This document shows, piece after piece, positions 4,630 to 15,520 of a DNA stretch of 64,000 bases (the stretch's first letter is position 1; each line of letters starts with the position of its first letter). The DNA comes from Dimorphilus gyrociliatus (taxonomy: Eukaryota; Animalia; Annelida), in the NCBI GenBank assembly GCA_904063045.1, contig CAJFCJ010000007.1, forward strand, positions 988,819 to 1,052,818, read 5' to 3'. The notes beneath the pieces are model-generated. The model was given only the letters and a program-made list of their open reading frames with translations. It was not told the origin of the DNA and did no database searches. Position numbers and translations under genes: made by a program.

Positions 4630-5487
4630 ATGGAAGCTGTCATGAACTCGGAGAAGCTTTTGAAAGAGAAAGTTCTCGTTTCCGCAGAGACGCAAACAAC
4701 GGAATCTGAGATGATTGCAACTGCCTTGAAATCAAGGAATGGGGCCGGAGATGCAGTGAAGAACAAAAATTATTTAGCCATGTCCGTTAAAGGGACCGTT
4801 AAATGGTTTAACGTAAAAAACGGTTATGGGTTTTTGACTAGAGATGATGACGGTCAAGACGTATTCATTCATCAAACCGCTATAATTCGAAATAACCCGC
4901 GAAAGTTACTTAGAAGCGTCGGAGACGGCGAAAAAGTTGAGTTTGATGTTGTTGTGGGTTTAAAAGGCGTTGAAGCGGCAAATGTTACAGGCCCAGAGGG
5001 TAGACCGGTCATAGGTTCTCAACATGCTCCTGAGAAAGAAGGAAGACGACCTTTATACAGACAACCCATGTCTGGCTATCGAAGCCACTCAGCGTACGTC
5101 AATCGCAAATGGTGGCGTTCACCATCAAAGCGTTATGAATCTGATGAATCGGAAGCGTCAAGACGAAGGGGTCGTCGAACAATTTACAAAACGATACATC
5201 CCGAAAGAGAGGTAAGTACCACCGAAGAAATTTCAACTCCAGAAACGTCACCACCAAAGACAAAGACTAGACATCAAATCAAAAAGACAAGTTCGGGTAA
5301 TGTTACAAGTTATTCAAAAGGAGGCTTTAGATTCCCATACCGTAGTAGATCGGCTGCTTTTTATGATTATGATGGTTACCATTTCTATCCGCCACATAGT
5401 CGACGCCAGTTTTACTACAGTCCGTCGACTTATCGACGTCCCCAAAGCGTTTATTGCCCGAATCTTCAACAGTCTACCCGCTATTAA
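4630..5487 (+). CDS. YBX: Y-box / cold-shock-domain RNA-binding protein, intronless, 285 aa
   Basis: Canonical Y-box CSD: [65 protein letters not shown], followed by an Arg/Tyr-rich tail. Single uninterrupted ORF. Confidence 0.92.
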
Positions 5488-7109: not shown

Positions 7110-8255
7110 TTAGAGCTATTTATGTTTAACTAATAGACCATGTATTTAAGGTAAACAATCTCCTTCATTCAACCATGTATAAGCAAGATTACAGTATTGT
7201 TGCAGCTGTTAACGTTTCACACCCGAAAGAAGGGAAATTTTCAACTCTTTTTTTTTCCACGAAAAAAAAGAAATAGTTTTTCAATCGAAATTTAAAACCA
7301 ATAAGCTCGCTAATAGTATGTGAACATTGTCACATGTTCGACTTACAGTTAGAATGGTAGACGTGGTCAACCGTTGTGATAACGGCTGCATATTACATTC
7401 CTTGTTTTTCTATTCTTCTCTACTCCCCTACCAGCTTTGTTTGTCTATAATCGTCTTTTTTTATCCCCCATACCCATACCCTTCCGTCTATCTTTCTAAC
7501 GTTACGGTGTGCACTTTCCCCCTCGCCCCCCGTTTCCCTAACCTCCTCACCCCCTCCCCTCTCTAACTGTCTCTCTCTCTCTCTCTCTTTCTCTATGGCC
7601 CCAACCCCCTGCCCTCACCCCCTCCTCTCTCTCTCTCTATTTACCGACTATCGTCGTGCCAGTTACGTTAGCCGAGATAGACACTCCATTTTCGAGGATC
7701 GTCTTTAACTAGCATAAACTTGATATATAAACGTAACGTTGTATAGGTAGATCTATAAAATGCTCGGTTAGAGACGGGGAAGAAGAAGAAAAAGTGGGCA
7801 ATAGAATACCGTACGTACAATAGAGAGATAAAGAGGAGAAAAAGAAAAGAAACAAAAGAATGCGATAGTGTTGCATAATGAAAAAGTAAAAGCGATAAAA
7901 ATTTGTTATAGAATTATAGAACAATGACGCGTTGTTTTACAGATAATAATTAGAAGCAGAGACAAATTATTCGTTCAACAATTAACTTCGTTCCGTCTAG
8001 AGCCTTCGGGCTGCCAGAAAACACCCGATTCCTATCTACTAACGTACTGTTTATTTAAACTTCTCTTTTCAAGCGTTAAAGGCCGATAGCCGAGAAACAG
8101 TTGGCTCTGTTATTTCTTTAAGACTAGAAAGAGGAAATAATAGAGGATGAGGGGGAGAGTATAACGGTCTTATTTAACTACTGGTCCTTTTTTTAGCAAC
8201 ATTCCTACTTAAGGACTCTATTAATGGAGCTAAGGAGTCATTTTCTTAAAATATT
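7110..8255 (+). repeat. Arm A of an inverted segmental duplication (near-identical core 7650-8073)
   Basis: Reverse complement of about 14460-15520. The core 7650-8073 matches 14600-15023 (both 424 bp) with one visible mismatch; the ORF track gives the same 71-aa translation at 7709-7924(-) and 14749-14964(+). Flanks on both sides align at roughly 70-85% by eye. Confidence 0.95.
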
Positions 8256-9168
8256 TACTGCCAAGTAGGCCTGGAGTAAATTTTTCATTTGCAAATTTTG
8301 TTTTTAATAAATTCCGTTGAGTGTATCAAAGTTTTTTTAAACTCTAGATAAAATTAACGGATTACAGTTGCTCTTAAACATAGGCAATTATTGAGGGAAT
8401 ATGATATGTAGATGAACGATATTTCTTTAGATAAGCTGGTAAGAGCTTTAAGCGAATCCATCAACGATCATAATGAGAGATGTAATTGGTATTTGAACTT
8501 CTTTTGAGTTTAGCTGGTGAAGTAATGGACTAACATATGCAGAGGGTTAATCATTCAATGTTATTCATATACTTGCTTCAGCTATTTTTATTATTTTTTG
8601 CAAACATTTGCTAACATTAATTATCCTGTCGTTTTTTTTGTGTAACGTGTATTGTACACTGTTTAGAATAGAAAAGTAAAACAGACCTATATCGAGTACA
8701 TCCGAAATTTATCATTCCGCCTCCAATACTTTAATAGGGTGCAGAAGGGGCTACGCCCAAAAGACGCTGCTAAGACGTCGATAAACCGATAGAAAAAAAA
8801 GAGGTAGGGTACGGGCAAAATTATCGTGGTCATTAAAAAATCGTTTGCTTTGGACTAAAAAATTCAATTACCTTATAAGGACATTTATAAGACCACTGCA
8901 GTTTTTTTTTTAATTCTAAACCAAACTGTTTTTAAAATTACCGCTTAACTACATTATTTCGTCAGATGTAATTTAAATTATTTGAAATCGTTAAAGCTCA
9001 ATTATTATTTGAGTGATATAATTGCGATACTCTTATCCGATAACGTCCTCTTGAATAACAAGATTTCGAATGAAGATAAATTAAGTAGTGGGAATATAGA
9101 GTGTAGATAAAATAGATTCAAAACAATTATTACTCATACAAAGGGATCAAAGAGCAGTTTGGGGCAGT

Positions 9169-10002
9169 ATGGCAAAAAGTAAACAAGAGTTAATGACTAG
9201 GGGTCCCAGAACAAGGGGTAAAGTGTCACAATTCCACCAACAAACCCAATTACCACAAGTAACACAGCCACACCCGCAACAAAAAGCTGTGAAAGAAAAG
9301 AAAAAAAGATTATCCAAAGAGCATAGTCATCATAAGAAAAAACAATCCCTAGACTCTCATAATTCTGATAATTCTGAAAAGTCTAACAATTCCGACTCGG
9401 GAAGTAAAGAATCAGGTGAACATAAATCCGAATCCGCGTCCCATTCGGATCCTGAATCTCATTCAGAATCTATAGCGAAGAAAAAGAGTCGTAAAAAAAG
9501 GAAGAAATCTCATAAATTGCAAAAGCAGCATCGAAAAGAGAAAAGTGCGAAGAAGAAAGAAAAGAAACGTGTCACTGAAGTAGTAAATGACGACGAAAAG
9601 GCTGTAAAAAAGAAGAGGAAGAGAAGATATAAAGATGGAGGGGGTGACGATTTATTTGGGGGACATGTGGGAGATGTACAAGGAATAATGAGAGTTACTG
9701 GGGGAGCAGGTGAAGGTGTTAGCGACAATAGATCAGGAGAAGAGGCACTCTGTGTCCTAACAGAGGCAGATGTAAAAACTATTGAAGAGAAGTCGGCTTT
9801 CGTCACAGAATGCCCTGGCTGTCATTCAACGATTCGAACAAACATTCAGCACGATGTTGAAAGTGATTCATTCGCTGTCATAGCCGCTTTATCAATTTGT
9901 TGCCTATGTTTTATTCCATTCTTATTTAAGGATTGTCAAACAGTTAGTCATTATTGCCCAGAGTGTCACCAAAAGATAAGCAAATCCAAACCTTTCTGCT
10001 AA
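9169..10002 (+). CDS. LITAF/CDIP1-family zinc-binding domain protein with long Lys/His/Ser-rich N-terminus, intronless, 277 aa
   Basis: C-terminal TECPGCHSTIRT...hydrophobic stretch (FAVIAALSICCLCFIPFLF)...VSHYCPECHQKI is the LITAF CxxC-hydrophobic-HxCxxC signature. Confidence 0.88.
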   Translation: MAKSKQELMTRGPRTRGKVSQFHQQTQLPQVTQPHPQQKAVKEKKKRLSKEHSHHKKKQSLDSHNSDNSEKSNNSDSGSKESGEHKSESASHSDPESHSESIAKKKSRKKRKKSHKLQKQHRKEKSAKKKEKKRVTEVVNDDEKAVKKKRKRRYKDGGGDDLFGGHVGDVQGIMRVTGGAGEGVSDNRSGEEALCVLTEADVKTIEEKSAFVTECPGCHSTIRTNIQHDVESDSFAVIAALSICCLCFIPFLFKDCQTVSHYCPECHQKISKSKPFC

Positions 10003-13000
10003 ATTGAAGGTGCTTTAAAGTCTAGAATATACGAGAAAAGTCTGATTCGAATGGTAATAAATTAAAGAAAATATGCTTCTTCTTCCGCATCTTCGATCGA
10101 CTGTGTCAACAGGAAAGGCGATAGTTGACGCGCGTATGCAAATTAGCGTCGGAGACGCATCTGCTGCTCTCCTTGATGCACGTATGATTACCATAGTTTG
10201 TAATTTTGCCGGGCTGCTTAGGCTGTATACCATTATACATATACATTTCCGAGAAAATGGGATTTTCAATGCTTTGTGGGTGGTAGGATTAACGCGTGAA
10301 AAGTTGGGGATTATCATTGCTCTTATCAATCGAAGCCATAACGAGATAGCGGAACGGTCGGTCTGAGCTGATAAACCGTTTCTTTTCGTGACCGTTTCTT
10401 TTTTTTCCTTTCGTGTCCAAAAAGGGCGTGCTCGATTGCATGGAAGAAACGTATTGAGAATATACGACTTCTTAACGAAAAGTACGGCTTTTTATAAACC
10501 TTTAAAAAAATGGCTTCCTATAGCTTATACAAACTATAAAGGTTCGACTTTCTAATCCTATAAGAAAAATGCGATCGTTAGGAGGCGTCTCGGATTATTG
10601 GTTATCTGCTATACGTAAGAGAATTATCAGTGTACGGTCGGTTTGCATTAATTGAATCTCTAATCTGTTTTCGGTGAAATTGGAAGAAGACTGTAAAAAG
10701 CGTTTCGGAAAGAATTGCGTAATCGAAAAGGTGCGGAAATCAATATAAAATTCCTGTCGTTCTTTTGATCTATTGACGCTACCCAGATTTATGTCTTATC
10801 CAATGACCTATGACGACGTCTCGTATTGACCGATTGCTATTTTCGTTGATTATACCTTATTAACGACCTTCTTCCCTTCATCTTAATGTCTAATTCATTT
10901 ATTTATTTATTCATTCATTAATCTTTCTAAACATTAAGGCTAATATCAAAAACACAACTAATCATTGTCTTATTAGGTACAAAACAAAAAGATTCAAAAA
11001 GAAATCATATTGTTACTTAATACGTAATTAAACCTGGAAAAGAATGACCAATGGCTATCAATAACTGATCAACTAGGTAGATGAAAGGGAATACACGAGA
11101 GAATTGCTTAAAGTTGTATATTTATACTTTTCTCTGCAGTCGAGCACCTGCAAATTGCTTGTTGACTAGGAAGCAGCTGTAAATATTTTGTTATAGTTGT
11201 AATTATTCCTTAATAAAAAGTCATAGAGTTAAAAAGGATAAGTTAAGAAAGAGAATTGATAAGTTTACACTTGACTCTTTACAAGCCCTGATAATGGATG
11301 ATAAAGATAATAATGAGATTTCTTATTGCCGTTTCTGTCTCTCTATAATAATAAGTTTCAGACGCAATTGGTATATAAAATACATTAATATATAAATGTT
11401 TATGATCCAATTCTGAAATAGTTATTATTAGGCTGTTGGAAATGTTTTATATTTAAACATATATGACCTATTATTGTTAGCTGTAAGAATCTATTGGAGC
11501 CAACTGCAACATAAGTTTTAACAAAGTTAAGCAGACCGTAAGGGATGTATTGACAGTTCTGTCTTGTCTTATACTTGTATTTAATGTATTATTGTTGTAT
11601 ATAAACAAGAAAAGAGTTTATATATTCTATATAAGTTGGACACTCTGATCCATTAGCCTGTTGCGACGACGCTTTGCAGAGTAAACAGGAGCCTGACATT
11701 TGCAACGATCGGATATATAATACGGCTGAGCGTATTTACTCTACGCTACCGGTACTTTTTTTCCCGTTTTGGTTGAAGAAAAAAAAAGGAGACGCCTGCC
11801 AGGAAATGGAAGGTTATTGGCAGCTTTCATCGCGAATTGAGCAGACTGTCCATTATAATAGCCTGTACTTAATTGAACGGTAAATGATTGAGAAGGCTCC
11901 CCATGCAATAATGGATATCACGATATTGGTCAAGGGTCAAATCAATGTTTTGAACGCTCTTATTGAAATATTACTTCGAAAGAAATATCCAATAGAATCC
12001 TACTCAACTATTATTGCCCTGTTTTCTATAGTTGTGTTTGTTTATTTAATATACAAGTAGAAGGATGCATTAGGCCTATTGCGCAAAGGTTCTGTTAATG
12101 GTGAACCGGCTAACGTTGTTAGCGACGAGTGGACGGTGTAGTGGGAACCATTAGCGATATTCGGCGCGCGTTGGATATTATTATATGGGATTTGTGTGTT
12201 TTAGGATTATCGAGTTGATTAGTGAGCGGCTACAGCTTTGAAATATTATAAAAAATTGTACAAAAAGTGTGAAATATCAATTATAGTAAAATTTAGAAAA
12301 ATAGAAAAAAAAGGGCTAAAGGGCAACGGCTAGTAGTTGGGTGGAGAAAAAAAGTGCGGATAAAGAAAGGGGCGGAAGTGAGAAAATAATGGAGGCATAA
12401 AGCTCCTAATACATATTCATGTAGTATTTATACTACTAGGCACGTGTTGTCTCACTTCTACATTGGGCTAACTTATTAAATTGATATTTAATGCTATCTC
12501 CATACGAATTAAATGGAAACTGATACAAACAATGTCGCGATTAATATTTGTTTTTCTTTTGGATACATGCTGTGCAAATAAAGAATGGTAAGCCCTTTTT
12601 TTTAGGCGAAGCTTATTTTGTCGTTTGATTGATTTTTCTACTCTTTTGTTTTCGCCAACTGAACGTTGAAGCGTCCACCTTTGTATAAACTTTGAAGGAT
12701 TTAGTGACACCTATTGACCAAATGTTAAATACTTTTGTAAACATTATTAAATTTTGGTTGAAGGAAATGAAAAGGGAGAAATCTAAGAGAAGTTTGTTTC
12801 ATTTTTCCATCTTGGAAATCCAATTACTGATTCGCCCATTGAAATAAGAAATATTCACAATGCAGTTAATAAATAATAAAACTTATGTATTTTTTTCTTT
12901 TTTTGTATATTGTAGGAAATTGAAGAAGACTATTCTCATTTGTCACGTTTTCTTAGACTATTCGATTGCGTTCAATCGAAATAACGAGTTAGTTCTTTTT

Positions 13001-13321
13001 TTTTCTAGTAAAATCAAAATTGTATGGGAAGAAAACCCAACCACGTATTACTAAATAGAGAAACTCAGGAAATGTCGACCGCCATTTCCGCTCGACGCCC
13101 GTGTAACACCCGGCAAACAGACGTCGAGAATACACGCGTGCGCAGCAGTAGGGATAAATCTAATTAGGTCGTGCGTCGTTACCATAATTGTTCCATCAGT
13201 CGCTTATCCAGATCGTTTTGAACGTATTGAATGGGTCAAATTCACATAGAGTATGTTAAATGAAACTCGAGAAACTAATTTCATTCCTAGGCATGCATTA
13301 ATTGCAAAGGTTTACACTCTA

Positions 13322-13340
13322 TGTGTGTGTGTGTGTGTGT
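13322..13340. repeat. (TG)n microsatellite
   Basis: About 9 TG units. Confidence 0.9.
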
Positions 13341-14459
13341 TTGTGAGGGAAAGAGAGAGAGCATGGGAAAACACAAGAAAGAATAAACACTAAAATGGAC
13401 TTGTTACGTAATAATAAGATGTCTTGTTGTATTTGTTTCTCTATTAAAGAGATTTTAGAATGTCAATGGGACAAATTGCTGTGTGTTCCTTGGATTCATT
13501 ACATCCGCCTATTTTTTTCATTTTAGACGCCCAGGCACGTTTTTACTAACCGATTGACCTTTTAAACTCATTATTCCTTGTTACTTTTTTTCAGTATTTT
13601 CCATTTTTTTATAGCATATAAACGTGAGATTGAAAAGCGTAAACAGTACATTATTTTGCTGATCTTTATCTGTGGCGTAAAATGACGCTTGAAACGCCCA
13701 AAGGGACTCTGGCTCCTTGGCAGATCAATAGGAGTCTATGCTTAAAGTTTCATACTGATTAGTTAAAAGAGTATTGAAGGACCGTACCGAACAAAAATGT
13801 TTTTACGTATAAATTGTGTATATTAGATCAGAACACATCAGATTTTTCAAACGCCGCAAAAGCGATGTTCGTCTTTAAGTTCTCTTATAAAATCCACTTG
13901 AAAACGAACATCACTTTTTTTACAATTCTTTTCTTTGCAGCTTAAATAGTAACTTTATTTTCCTTTTTATTAAAAGTAGAGAAATCACGTGAGTGGTCGA
14001 ATATAAAATTGCCTTTTAATTAAAACTCGCGTGCAGTACTTTTCTATTGTTCACGTTCGGTCGAGGAAGGGAAAAAGGTGACAATGAAAAAAAAAAGAAA
14101 ATAATAATCGTCCGAGCCCCTTAACGATTTCGGATAAAAAATACGGTGGTCAGTTAGAGTACGCATTGTCGGTGGCTAGGCCTAATTGCAAACAAGAGAA
14201 TTCATTTAGTTCTACGATCGATTAACCCCACGAATGCGCCTCCTAATGAGTAGGCCTAGAACTTGTTGCGCTTGAAAGGTAAGATTCGACGCTTGATTAA
14301 TTGATTAGGTCTTTTGATGCCGCAAATATCTTTAGATTATTCAAAGAAAAATTAGCGAGTTACGAGCTTTTTCTCATCTTTCTAACGGTCTCATTCATTA
14401 AATATTTTAGTGATAGAATGTGAGAGAACGAAATCGTCTTTCACGCCTTTTCTTTCTTA

Positions 14460-15520
14460 ATCCATTGAATTATTTAAAAAACGACTCCTTGGTGACAGCA
14501 AGAACTGTTCTTAAGTAAAGATGGTGGGAAACTCGGGAGAGTTAGAGTAGTTTATTAGAAAAAAAACAGTTGCTAGTTATTGGCTATTGGCCTGTAACTC
14601 TTGGAAAGAGAAGTTTAAATAAACAGTACGTTAGTAGATAGGAATCGGGTGTTTTCTGGCAGCCCGAAGGCTCTAGACGGAACGAAGTTAATTGTTGAAC
14701 GAATAATTTGTCTCTGCTTCTAATTATTATCTGTAAAACAACGCGTCATTGTTCTATAATTCTATAACAAATTTTTATCGCTTTTACTTTTTCATTATGC
14801 AACACTATCGCATTCTTTTGTTTCTTTTCTTTTTCTCCTCTTTATCTCTCTATTGTACGTACGGTATTCTATTGCCCACTTTTTCTTCTTCTTCCCCGTC
14901 TCTAACCGAGCATTTTATAGATCTACCTATACAACGTTACGTTTATATATCAAGTTTATGCTAGTTAAAGACGATCCTCGAAAATGGAGTGTCTATCTCG
15001 GCTAACGTAACTGGCACGACGATTGTTTATATCTGCTTGTATGTAAAGAGCAAGAGAGAGAGAGAGACAGAGACAGAGAAAGAGAGAGAAAAAAAGAGAG
15101 AGAAAATGACAAAGATAGAGACAGAAAGTTTGACATGAGAGACAGGGAAAAGTGCACCTCACAAAGTTAGAAAGTCAGACAAAAAGACGCTTATAAACAA
15201 ACAAAGCTACCGGGGTGCAATAGGGAAATATAGCAGAATGAGGAATGTAATGTGTGTCGGTTGTCATGATGGTGGACCATGCCCTTCATATTAGTAGTTA
15301 AATCGAACATGTGACAATGTTCACATACTATTAACGAGCTTATCGGTTTTAAATTTCGATGGAAAGACTCTTTTTTCGTGGAAGTAGGAGGTGAAAATTT
15401 CCCTTCTTTCCAACGTGGAACGCAAACAGCTGGAACAATACTGGAATCTTGCTTATACATGGTTGACTGAAAAAGATTGTTTACCTTAAATACATGGTCT
15501 ATTAACCAAACGTAAATAAG
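14460..15520 (-). repeat. Arm B of the inverted segmental duplication (near-identical core 14600-15023)
   Basis: Reverse complement of arm A; see arm A. Confidence 0.95.
14965..15032 (-). CDS. Possible terminal coding exon (x)INNRRASYVSRDRHSIFEDRL* at the edge of the duplicated core; the same peptide end is at 7652-7708(+)
   Basis: Preceded by a pyrimidine tract of about 100 nt and a CAG| acceptor (15033). Arm A also has a long CT tract before it, but its first AG gives a different phase. No upstream exons identified. Confidence 0.25.

Follow-up and report, generated by a model that had tools for sequence, protein, structure and literature searches.

The window, a stretch of 64,000 nucleotides on one contig of the annelid Dimorphilus gyrociliatus, contains one inverted pair of sequences only, whose two arms enclose a single-copy spacer (Table 1). 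A repeat search, self-BLAST, global alignment and MAFFT agree on this pair. With a minimum length of 150 bp, no second inverted pair occurs within 264 kb (the window plus 200 kb beyond it). A preliminary description of the locus placed arms of about 1.1 kb approximately 6.2 kb apart: this arrangement stands, with the lengths revised to 1010 and 971 bp for the arms and 6421 bp for the spacer.

The spacer carries a LITAF-domain gene, and its ORF is listed as a called protein. The C-terminus of this protein is a LITAF-like zinc ribbon, comprising a CxxC motif, a hydrophobic stretch and HxCxxC, and the N-terminus is of low complexity and rich in Lys and Ser. There are four LITAF-domain loci in the genome, this one included, and a word search of the protein collection with the LITAF protein matched itself only.

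Table 1. Coordinates of the arms, their segments and the enclosed gene (positions in the window)
Feature	Position	Strand	Details
Left arm of inverted duplication, non-coding	7117-8126	+	1010 bp
Outer block	7117-7345	+	86% identical to 15299-15518; K2P 0.16
C-rich / (CT)n low-complexity tract	7446-7649	+	56% identity, 32 gap columns
Core, left copy (presumed conversion tract)	7650-8068	+	419 bp, 100% identical to right copy
Inner tail of old homology	8069-8126	+	68% identity, K2P 0.41; counterpart 14548-14604
Spacer, single-copy	8127-14547		6421 bp; LITAF-domain gene plus ~4.5 kb without recognisable gene
LITAF-domain gene, single-exon ORF	9169-10002	+	277 aa; Pfam PF10601, E 1.9e-15
Right arm of inverted duplication, non-coding	14548-15518	-	971 bp
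Core, right copy	14605-15023	-	419 bp, 100% identical to left copy
Right-arm counterpart of outer block	15299-15518	-	from alignment

Over an alignment of 1014 columns, 47 of them with gaps, the arms are 82% identical. This average conceals large local differences, and the initial view of an old inverted duplication with non-uniform identity is borne out by the identities of the individual segments. The most conserved part is an identical core. It had been claimed that 7650-8073 and 14600-15023 differ at one position, which is exact: a T/C mismatch lies at 8069 and is followed by matches at 8070-8073. Such a run is not expected by chance: when the 204 differing columns were permuted 20,000 times, no run reached 419 (the longest was 70), and the probability of 419 identical positions at the difference rate of the outer block is approximately 1e-36. 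The core contains A/G-rich, slippage-prone runs, yet these are identical between the arms, and copying explains this better than constraint on each base.

Outside of the core, identity is lower. Inward of the outer block, the segment 7346-7445 is only 66% identical (K2P 0.49). This is followed by the C-rich tract, which directly adjoins the core on its outer side and forms the abrupt boundary of the identical stretch. Its counterpart in the right arm is an (AG)n tract at approximately 15044-15140 that is barely alignable. At the inner edge, the global alignment places mismatches at 8069, 8074, 8079 and 8085, after which they become dense. This rise in density away from 8068 is what is expected of an eroding tract edge. 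As older homology (K2P 0.16-0.49) is found on both sides of the core, at 7117-7445 and 8069-8126, the core lies within the duplication and is not a later addition. Separately, the outer block, as read by eye, holds a start-plus-donor-like string; it also has an intron-like interval of 55 nt (7151-7205) that retains its terminal GT and AG in the left and right arms alike.

The locus is unique. In the 77.9-Mb assembly the core has two matches only, which are the two arms, and neither arms, core nor spacer has a further copy outside the locus in the assembly as a whole. It was suggested at the outset that the arm could be a dispersed repeat of high copy number; tested against the genome, this possibility is at odds with the count of two. 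In tblastx comparisons, homology is confined to 7116-8256 and 14467-15519 with nothing beyond, and the arms have no frame-specific conservation. A larger duplication, and paralogous genes hidden in or beyond the arms, are ruled out by this extent and by the absence of a preferred frame. The neighbouring proteins, CSD and LITAF, appear in the protein collection, and the other ORFs of the arms and spacer do not. A structured non-coding RNA gene in the core was likewise rejected: no Rfam family matches at the gathering threshold (a bacterial sRNA match, E 0.29, is at chance level), and the fold z-scores of -0.18 and 0.09 relative to shuffled sequences give no signal of stable structure. No tRNA match was found in the core.

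With their inverted arrangement around a gene, the arms could be terminal inverted repeats (TIRs): a large DNA transposon, or a foldback element, would have picked up the LITAF gene. Conservation of the outermost 230 bp is indeed fairly good (86%). We regard this origin as extremely improbable. The ends lack a target-site duplication, the only candidates being chance AT-rich 5-6-mers away from the boundaries; the spacer ORFs encode no transposase and no Pfam domain other than that of the LITAF gene; arms, core and spacer are single-locus; and the best-conserved part is internal rather than terminal. The preliminary description had argued against ordinary transposon TIRs, and the lack of a target-site duplication and of a transposase, together with the two copies, upholds that argument. 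Given the unique locus, the absence of these hallmarks and the lack of any sign of coding or RNA structure, we conclude that the arms are non-coding DNA duplicated in inverted orientation at this one locus, and not a mobile element.

The identity of the core could also be an artefact of assembly or polishing, as could the repeat itself. The assembly was built from PacBio reads, followed by Quiver, Pilon (with Illumina reads), HaploMerger2 and SSPACE, and near-identical paralogs can be homogenised by short-read polishing. Against this, the arms differ by 14-45% outside of the core, with many indels, which identifies them as true paralogs and not as alleles or a read palindrome. In addition, PacBio reads are far longer than the 419-bp repeat, both copies reside on the same 4.6-Mb contig with unique flanks, and sequences with 70-85% identity cannot be brought to 100% by polishing. 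An artefact is thus very unlikely, but the core identity of 100% might truly be approximately 99%, as Pilon could have erased a few paralogous differences.

Alternatively, the core could be a functional non-coding element (a promoter, 5'UTR exon, enhancer or lncRNA exon) that has been kept identical by purifying selection alone. Consistent with function, two TATA-like motifs in the core point into the spacer and, in the left arm, lie 1.4 kb upstream of the LITAF start; the donor/acceptor-like pair of the outer block is kept in both arms and, according to the source paper of the assembly, long UTRs occur in this genome. Even so, selection as the sole cause is quite unlikely. Constraint that allows zero changes in 419 bp, adjacent to sequence with a K2P of 0.4-0.5, would exceed nearly all that is known for non-coding DNA; low-complexity A/G runs lie within the core; and neither RNA structure nor a coding signal was found. 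Selection may explain why the arms persist, but not their exact identity.

The reading that we favour, with a probability of roughly 80%, is that of an inverted duplication of unique non-coding DNA, in which the 419-bp core is kept identical by arm-to-arm gene conversion. The locus has the features of such a system: two paralogous copies, a significantly similar contiguous stretch and older homology on both sides of it. Single conversion tracts in metazoans are usually of a length that includes 419 bp. We infer conversion as the cause from the pattern in one assembly. Here, a unique non-coding stretch of approximately 1 kb would have been duplicated in inverted orientation around a 6.4-kb, LITAF-bearing segment, after which most of both arms would have diverged by drift. 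Intrachromosomal, non-allelic gene conversion between the arms would then keep the 419-bp block identical. One edge of the tract lies at the fast-evolving, C/CT-rich microsatellite that breaks homology, and the other falls approximately 55 bp short of where the duplication ends on its inner side. The three levels of divergence (0, 0.16 and ~0.45) suggest that parts of the arm escaped conversion at different times, with the core as putatively the last block still converting.

The island had been described as freshly homogenised, and this part of the earlier account does not hold up as well. As recombination is unlikely between sequences that are 30-45% diverged and mismatches form a gradient at the inner edge, a better fit is homogenisation that has been continuous while its edges eroded. 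We think it more likely that the core is the shrinking remnant of that process than that diverged sequence was freshly overwritten.

The same block raises the question of whether the enclosed segment inverts. Inversion mediated by NAHR needs a long, uninterrupted identical block in inverted repeats; the arms have one of 419 bp at 100%, and perfect inverted homology of this length suffices for homologous exchange. One could propose that the core is identical because the locus flips recurrently or is the source of a long hairpin RNA (endo-siRNA), as a read-through transcript would make a perfect 419-bp stem. There is a precedent on yeast chromosome XIV, where homogenised inverted repeats flank a gene-bearing segment that crossing over re-inverts (Salzberg et al. 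2022, PMC9731477). Both proposals are highly improbable, as the single assembly has one orientation, transcription is unsupported and no target for the arms exists elsewhere in the genome. Moreover, whichever way the spacer lies, the arm sequence that faces it is the same at its two ends, and it is not obvious that flipping would switch the LITAF gene. By this symmetry, inverting the spacer should change little and would be nearly neutral for the enclosed gene. More elaborately, the 6.4-kb LITAF segment could be a recurrently re-inverting micro-inversion, with the promoter and 5' exon of LITAF duplicated as the arms and continual conversion sustaining the system. If this were true, the LITAF gene would be driven equally either way, the other arm would launch a convergent antisense transcript and the locus would be an animal equivalent of the flip/flop region in yeast. 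We consider this unlikely.

On present evidence, the inverted repeat is real but ordinary, and reveals no new mechanism or function. If gene conversion is responsible, as we favour, its value would lie in being a clean, small case of concerted evolution between non-coding duplicates in inverted orientation, in an animal whose genome is very compact, and its three strata of divergence could serve to study the escape of duplicated sequence from conversion. Should more such pairs be established in this genome, they might also reveal how micro-inversions originate there.

Arm-to-arm gene conversion is known from palindromes and inverted segmental duplications such as the human X/Y palindromes. These share with the present locus two inverted, paralogous arms on one chromosome, intrachromosomal conversion and a drop in identity at the tract edge. 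In the palindromes, however, kilobases to megabases are homogenised, whereas here it is 0.4 kb of non-coding sequence and conversion no longer reaches most of the arm. TIR transposons and foldback elements also bracket an internal segment with inverted repeats, but at this single locus there is neither a target-site duplication nor a transposase, and conservation is not highest at the termini. How the duplication arose may be explained by an old micro-inversion with staggered breaks. Such inversions yield inverted duplications of non-repetitive sequence, of 46 bp to 1.9 kb (PMC1885836), and an inverted duplication of this kind is found at both ends of the segment. The breakpoints of Ranz et al. 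2007 (PMC1885836) are similarly flanked by ancestrally unique, inverted duplications, with a mean identity of approximately 88%, and the ~1 kb seen here is within their range. Those Drosophila cases are large inversions for which identical cores were not reported (PMC1885836). The yeast flip/flop region resembles the locus in that a segment with genes is flanked by an inverted repeat undergoing continual homogenisation; it differs in that the yeast repeat consists of expressed genes over 4 kb and strains with either orientation were observed (PMC9731477), while no genes are seen in the arms here and one orientation is known.

Self-BLAST of the window joins the two inverted copies into one alignment (7117-8126 against 15518-14548) with 82% identity over 1014 columns, of which 47 are gaps. 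The arms measure 1010 and 971 bp and enclose a spacer of 6421 bp. A repeat search of the window resolved an inverted pair of 450 nt with 98% identity (7647-8096/14577-15026) and two outer inverted pairs, 7117-7247/15388-15518 (87%) and 7268-7345/15299-15376 (91%). The preliminary description of the arms and of a nearly identical 424-bp core was accurate: global and MAFFT alignments show 419 bp identical without interruption (7650-8068 = 15023-14605), and the 424-bp interval holds a lone mismatch at position 8069. Besides the arms, the 64-kb window has no repeat pair of substantial size, and no second inverted pair reaching 150 bp turned up in 264 contiguous kb (window plus 200 kb). Elsewhere on the contig (G000:C7, in contig positions) there is a direct duplication of ~3.2 kb, with 94-96% identity and copies ~5.8 kb apart (G000:C7:1116136-1125166), and a tandem array of roughly 12 units, each ~156 bp long, with 86-96% identity (G000:C7:1239951-1241785).

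Segments of the arm alignment (left-arm positions) and the gene in the spacer
Feature	Position	Strand	Identity	K2P	Remark
Outer block	7117-7345		86%	0.16	
Segment beside outer block	7346-7445		66%	0.49	nearly without gaps
Low-complexity segment, C-rich/(CT)n	7446-7649		56%	not meaningful	32 gap columns
Core	7650-8068		100%	0	
Inner tail	8069-8126		68%	0.41	
LITAF-domain gene	9169-10002	+			277 aa; only clear gene in spacer

When the 204 differing columns of the arm alignment were shuffled 20,000 times, the longest identical run was at most 70, versus the 419 observed in the core. At the outer-block rate, which is the mildest of the flank rates, a stretch of 419 sites would be free of differences with a probability of ~1e-36. 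The core is flanked on both sides by old homology and therefore belongs to the original duplication, rather than having been added later. It stops sharply at its outer edge, where the microsatellite tract lies. At the inner edge the global alignment places mismatches at 8069, 8074, 8079 and 8085, after which they become dense. In the left arm the low-complexity tract adjoining the core has turned C-rich (GC 0.53); in the right arm it has remained CT/AG-rich (15044-15140, GC 0.37).

The ~78-Mb Dimorphilus gyrociliatus assembly was made from PacBio data; Quiver and Pilon served for polishing, and HaploMerger2 was also run (PMC7854359). Because the differences outside the core are large, the arms are genuine paralogs; a long-read assembly is not troubled by a 419-bp repeat, and short-read polishing could at most have erased a few real differences. 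The core, outer arm and spacer were each queried against the entire 77.9-Mb assembly, giving exactly two matches for the core, two plus microsatellite noise for the outer arm, and one plus a (TG)n match for the spacer. These counts rule out a dispersed repeat, the high-copy alternative for which a genome-wide search had been proposed. As also reported in the preliminary description for target-site duplications, no direct repeat was found at the arm ends.

Tblastx scores in the arms were alike across all frames, and no homology was found past the arms. The core contained no tRNA and no Rfam family at the gathering threshold (E-value mode gave just a chance-level match), and its predicted RNA fold was no better than that of shuffled sequence on either strand. 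Other than the LITAF ORF, ORFs of the arms and spacer were absent from the called proteins, among which the LITAF protein and a cold-shock-domain protein encoded nearby (4630-5487) do appear. The identical island is real, locus-specific and statistically clear; the inverted duplication around it is old and non-coding.

The LITAF protein has a C-terminal LITAF-like zinc ribbon (PF10601, E 1.9e-15) and a Lys/Ser-rich, NLS-like N-terminus of 200 aa, in which, as in the remainder, no PPxY or PSAP motif was seen by eye. Among the genome's four LITAF-domain loci it has the weakest score, and a word search returned no full-length relative. Apart from the LITAF ORF, no spacer ORF carried a Pfam domain; in the ~4.5 kb at 10003-14547, neither ORFs nor Pfam domains nor repeats could be recognised, a conspicuous stretch for a genome that has been called gene-dense. 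The core holds two TATA-like motifs directed inward. By eye, a start-plus-donor-like string is followed ~55 nt on by a polypyrimidine-plus-AG acceptor-like site (7140-7210), and this is kept at 15430-15495 (-). Such an interval might represent a short intron belonging to a non-coding exon that is missing from the annotation, and with the TATA-like motifs it suggests, on a reading by eye, that the arms might be descended from promoter or 5'UTR sequence of the LITAF gene. The spacing is near the genome's reported median intron length of 66 bp.

The identical core is most simply explained by non-allelic gene conversion from one inverted arm to the other, a well-known process of which this pair would be another instance. 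Sequences that are 30-45% diverged recombine poorly, so the core more likely never diverged and would have been converted continually ever since the duplication. Blocks beside it may have escaped conversion at differing times, giving three divergence levels, with the microsatellite probably acting as a heterology barrier at one edge and the point where homology ends as one at the other. The mismatch gradient at the inner edge fits a slowly shrinking tract.

A perfect 419-bp inverted repeat suffices for crossing over, and each crossover would flip the spacer, of which one orientation is known, from a single assembly. The same arm sequence faces each spacer end in either orientation, so a flip would not obviously turn the LITAF gene on or off. 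The flip/flop region of yeast chromosome XIV shows that re-inversion can recur where inverted repeats are kept homogenised (PMC9731477). The duplication itself may be the footprint of a staggered-break inversion: such events leave up to 1.9 kb of unique sequence duplicated in inverted orientation at their breakpoints (PMC1885836), and the pair described here appears to have the same form.
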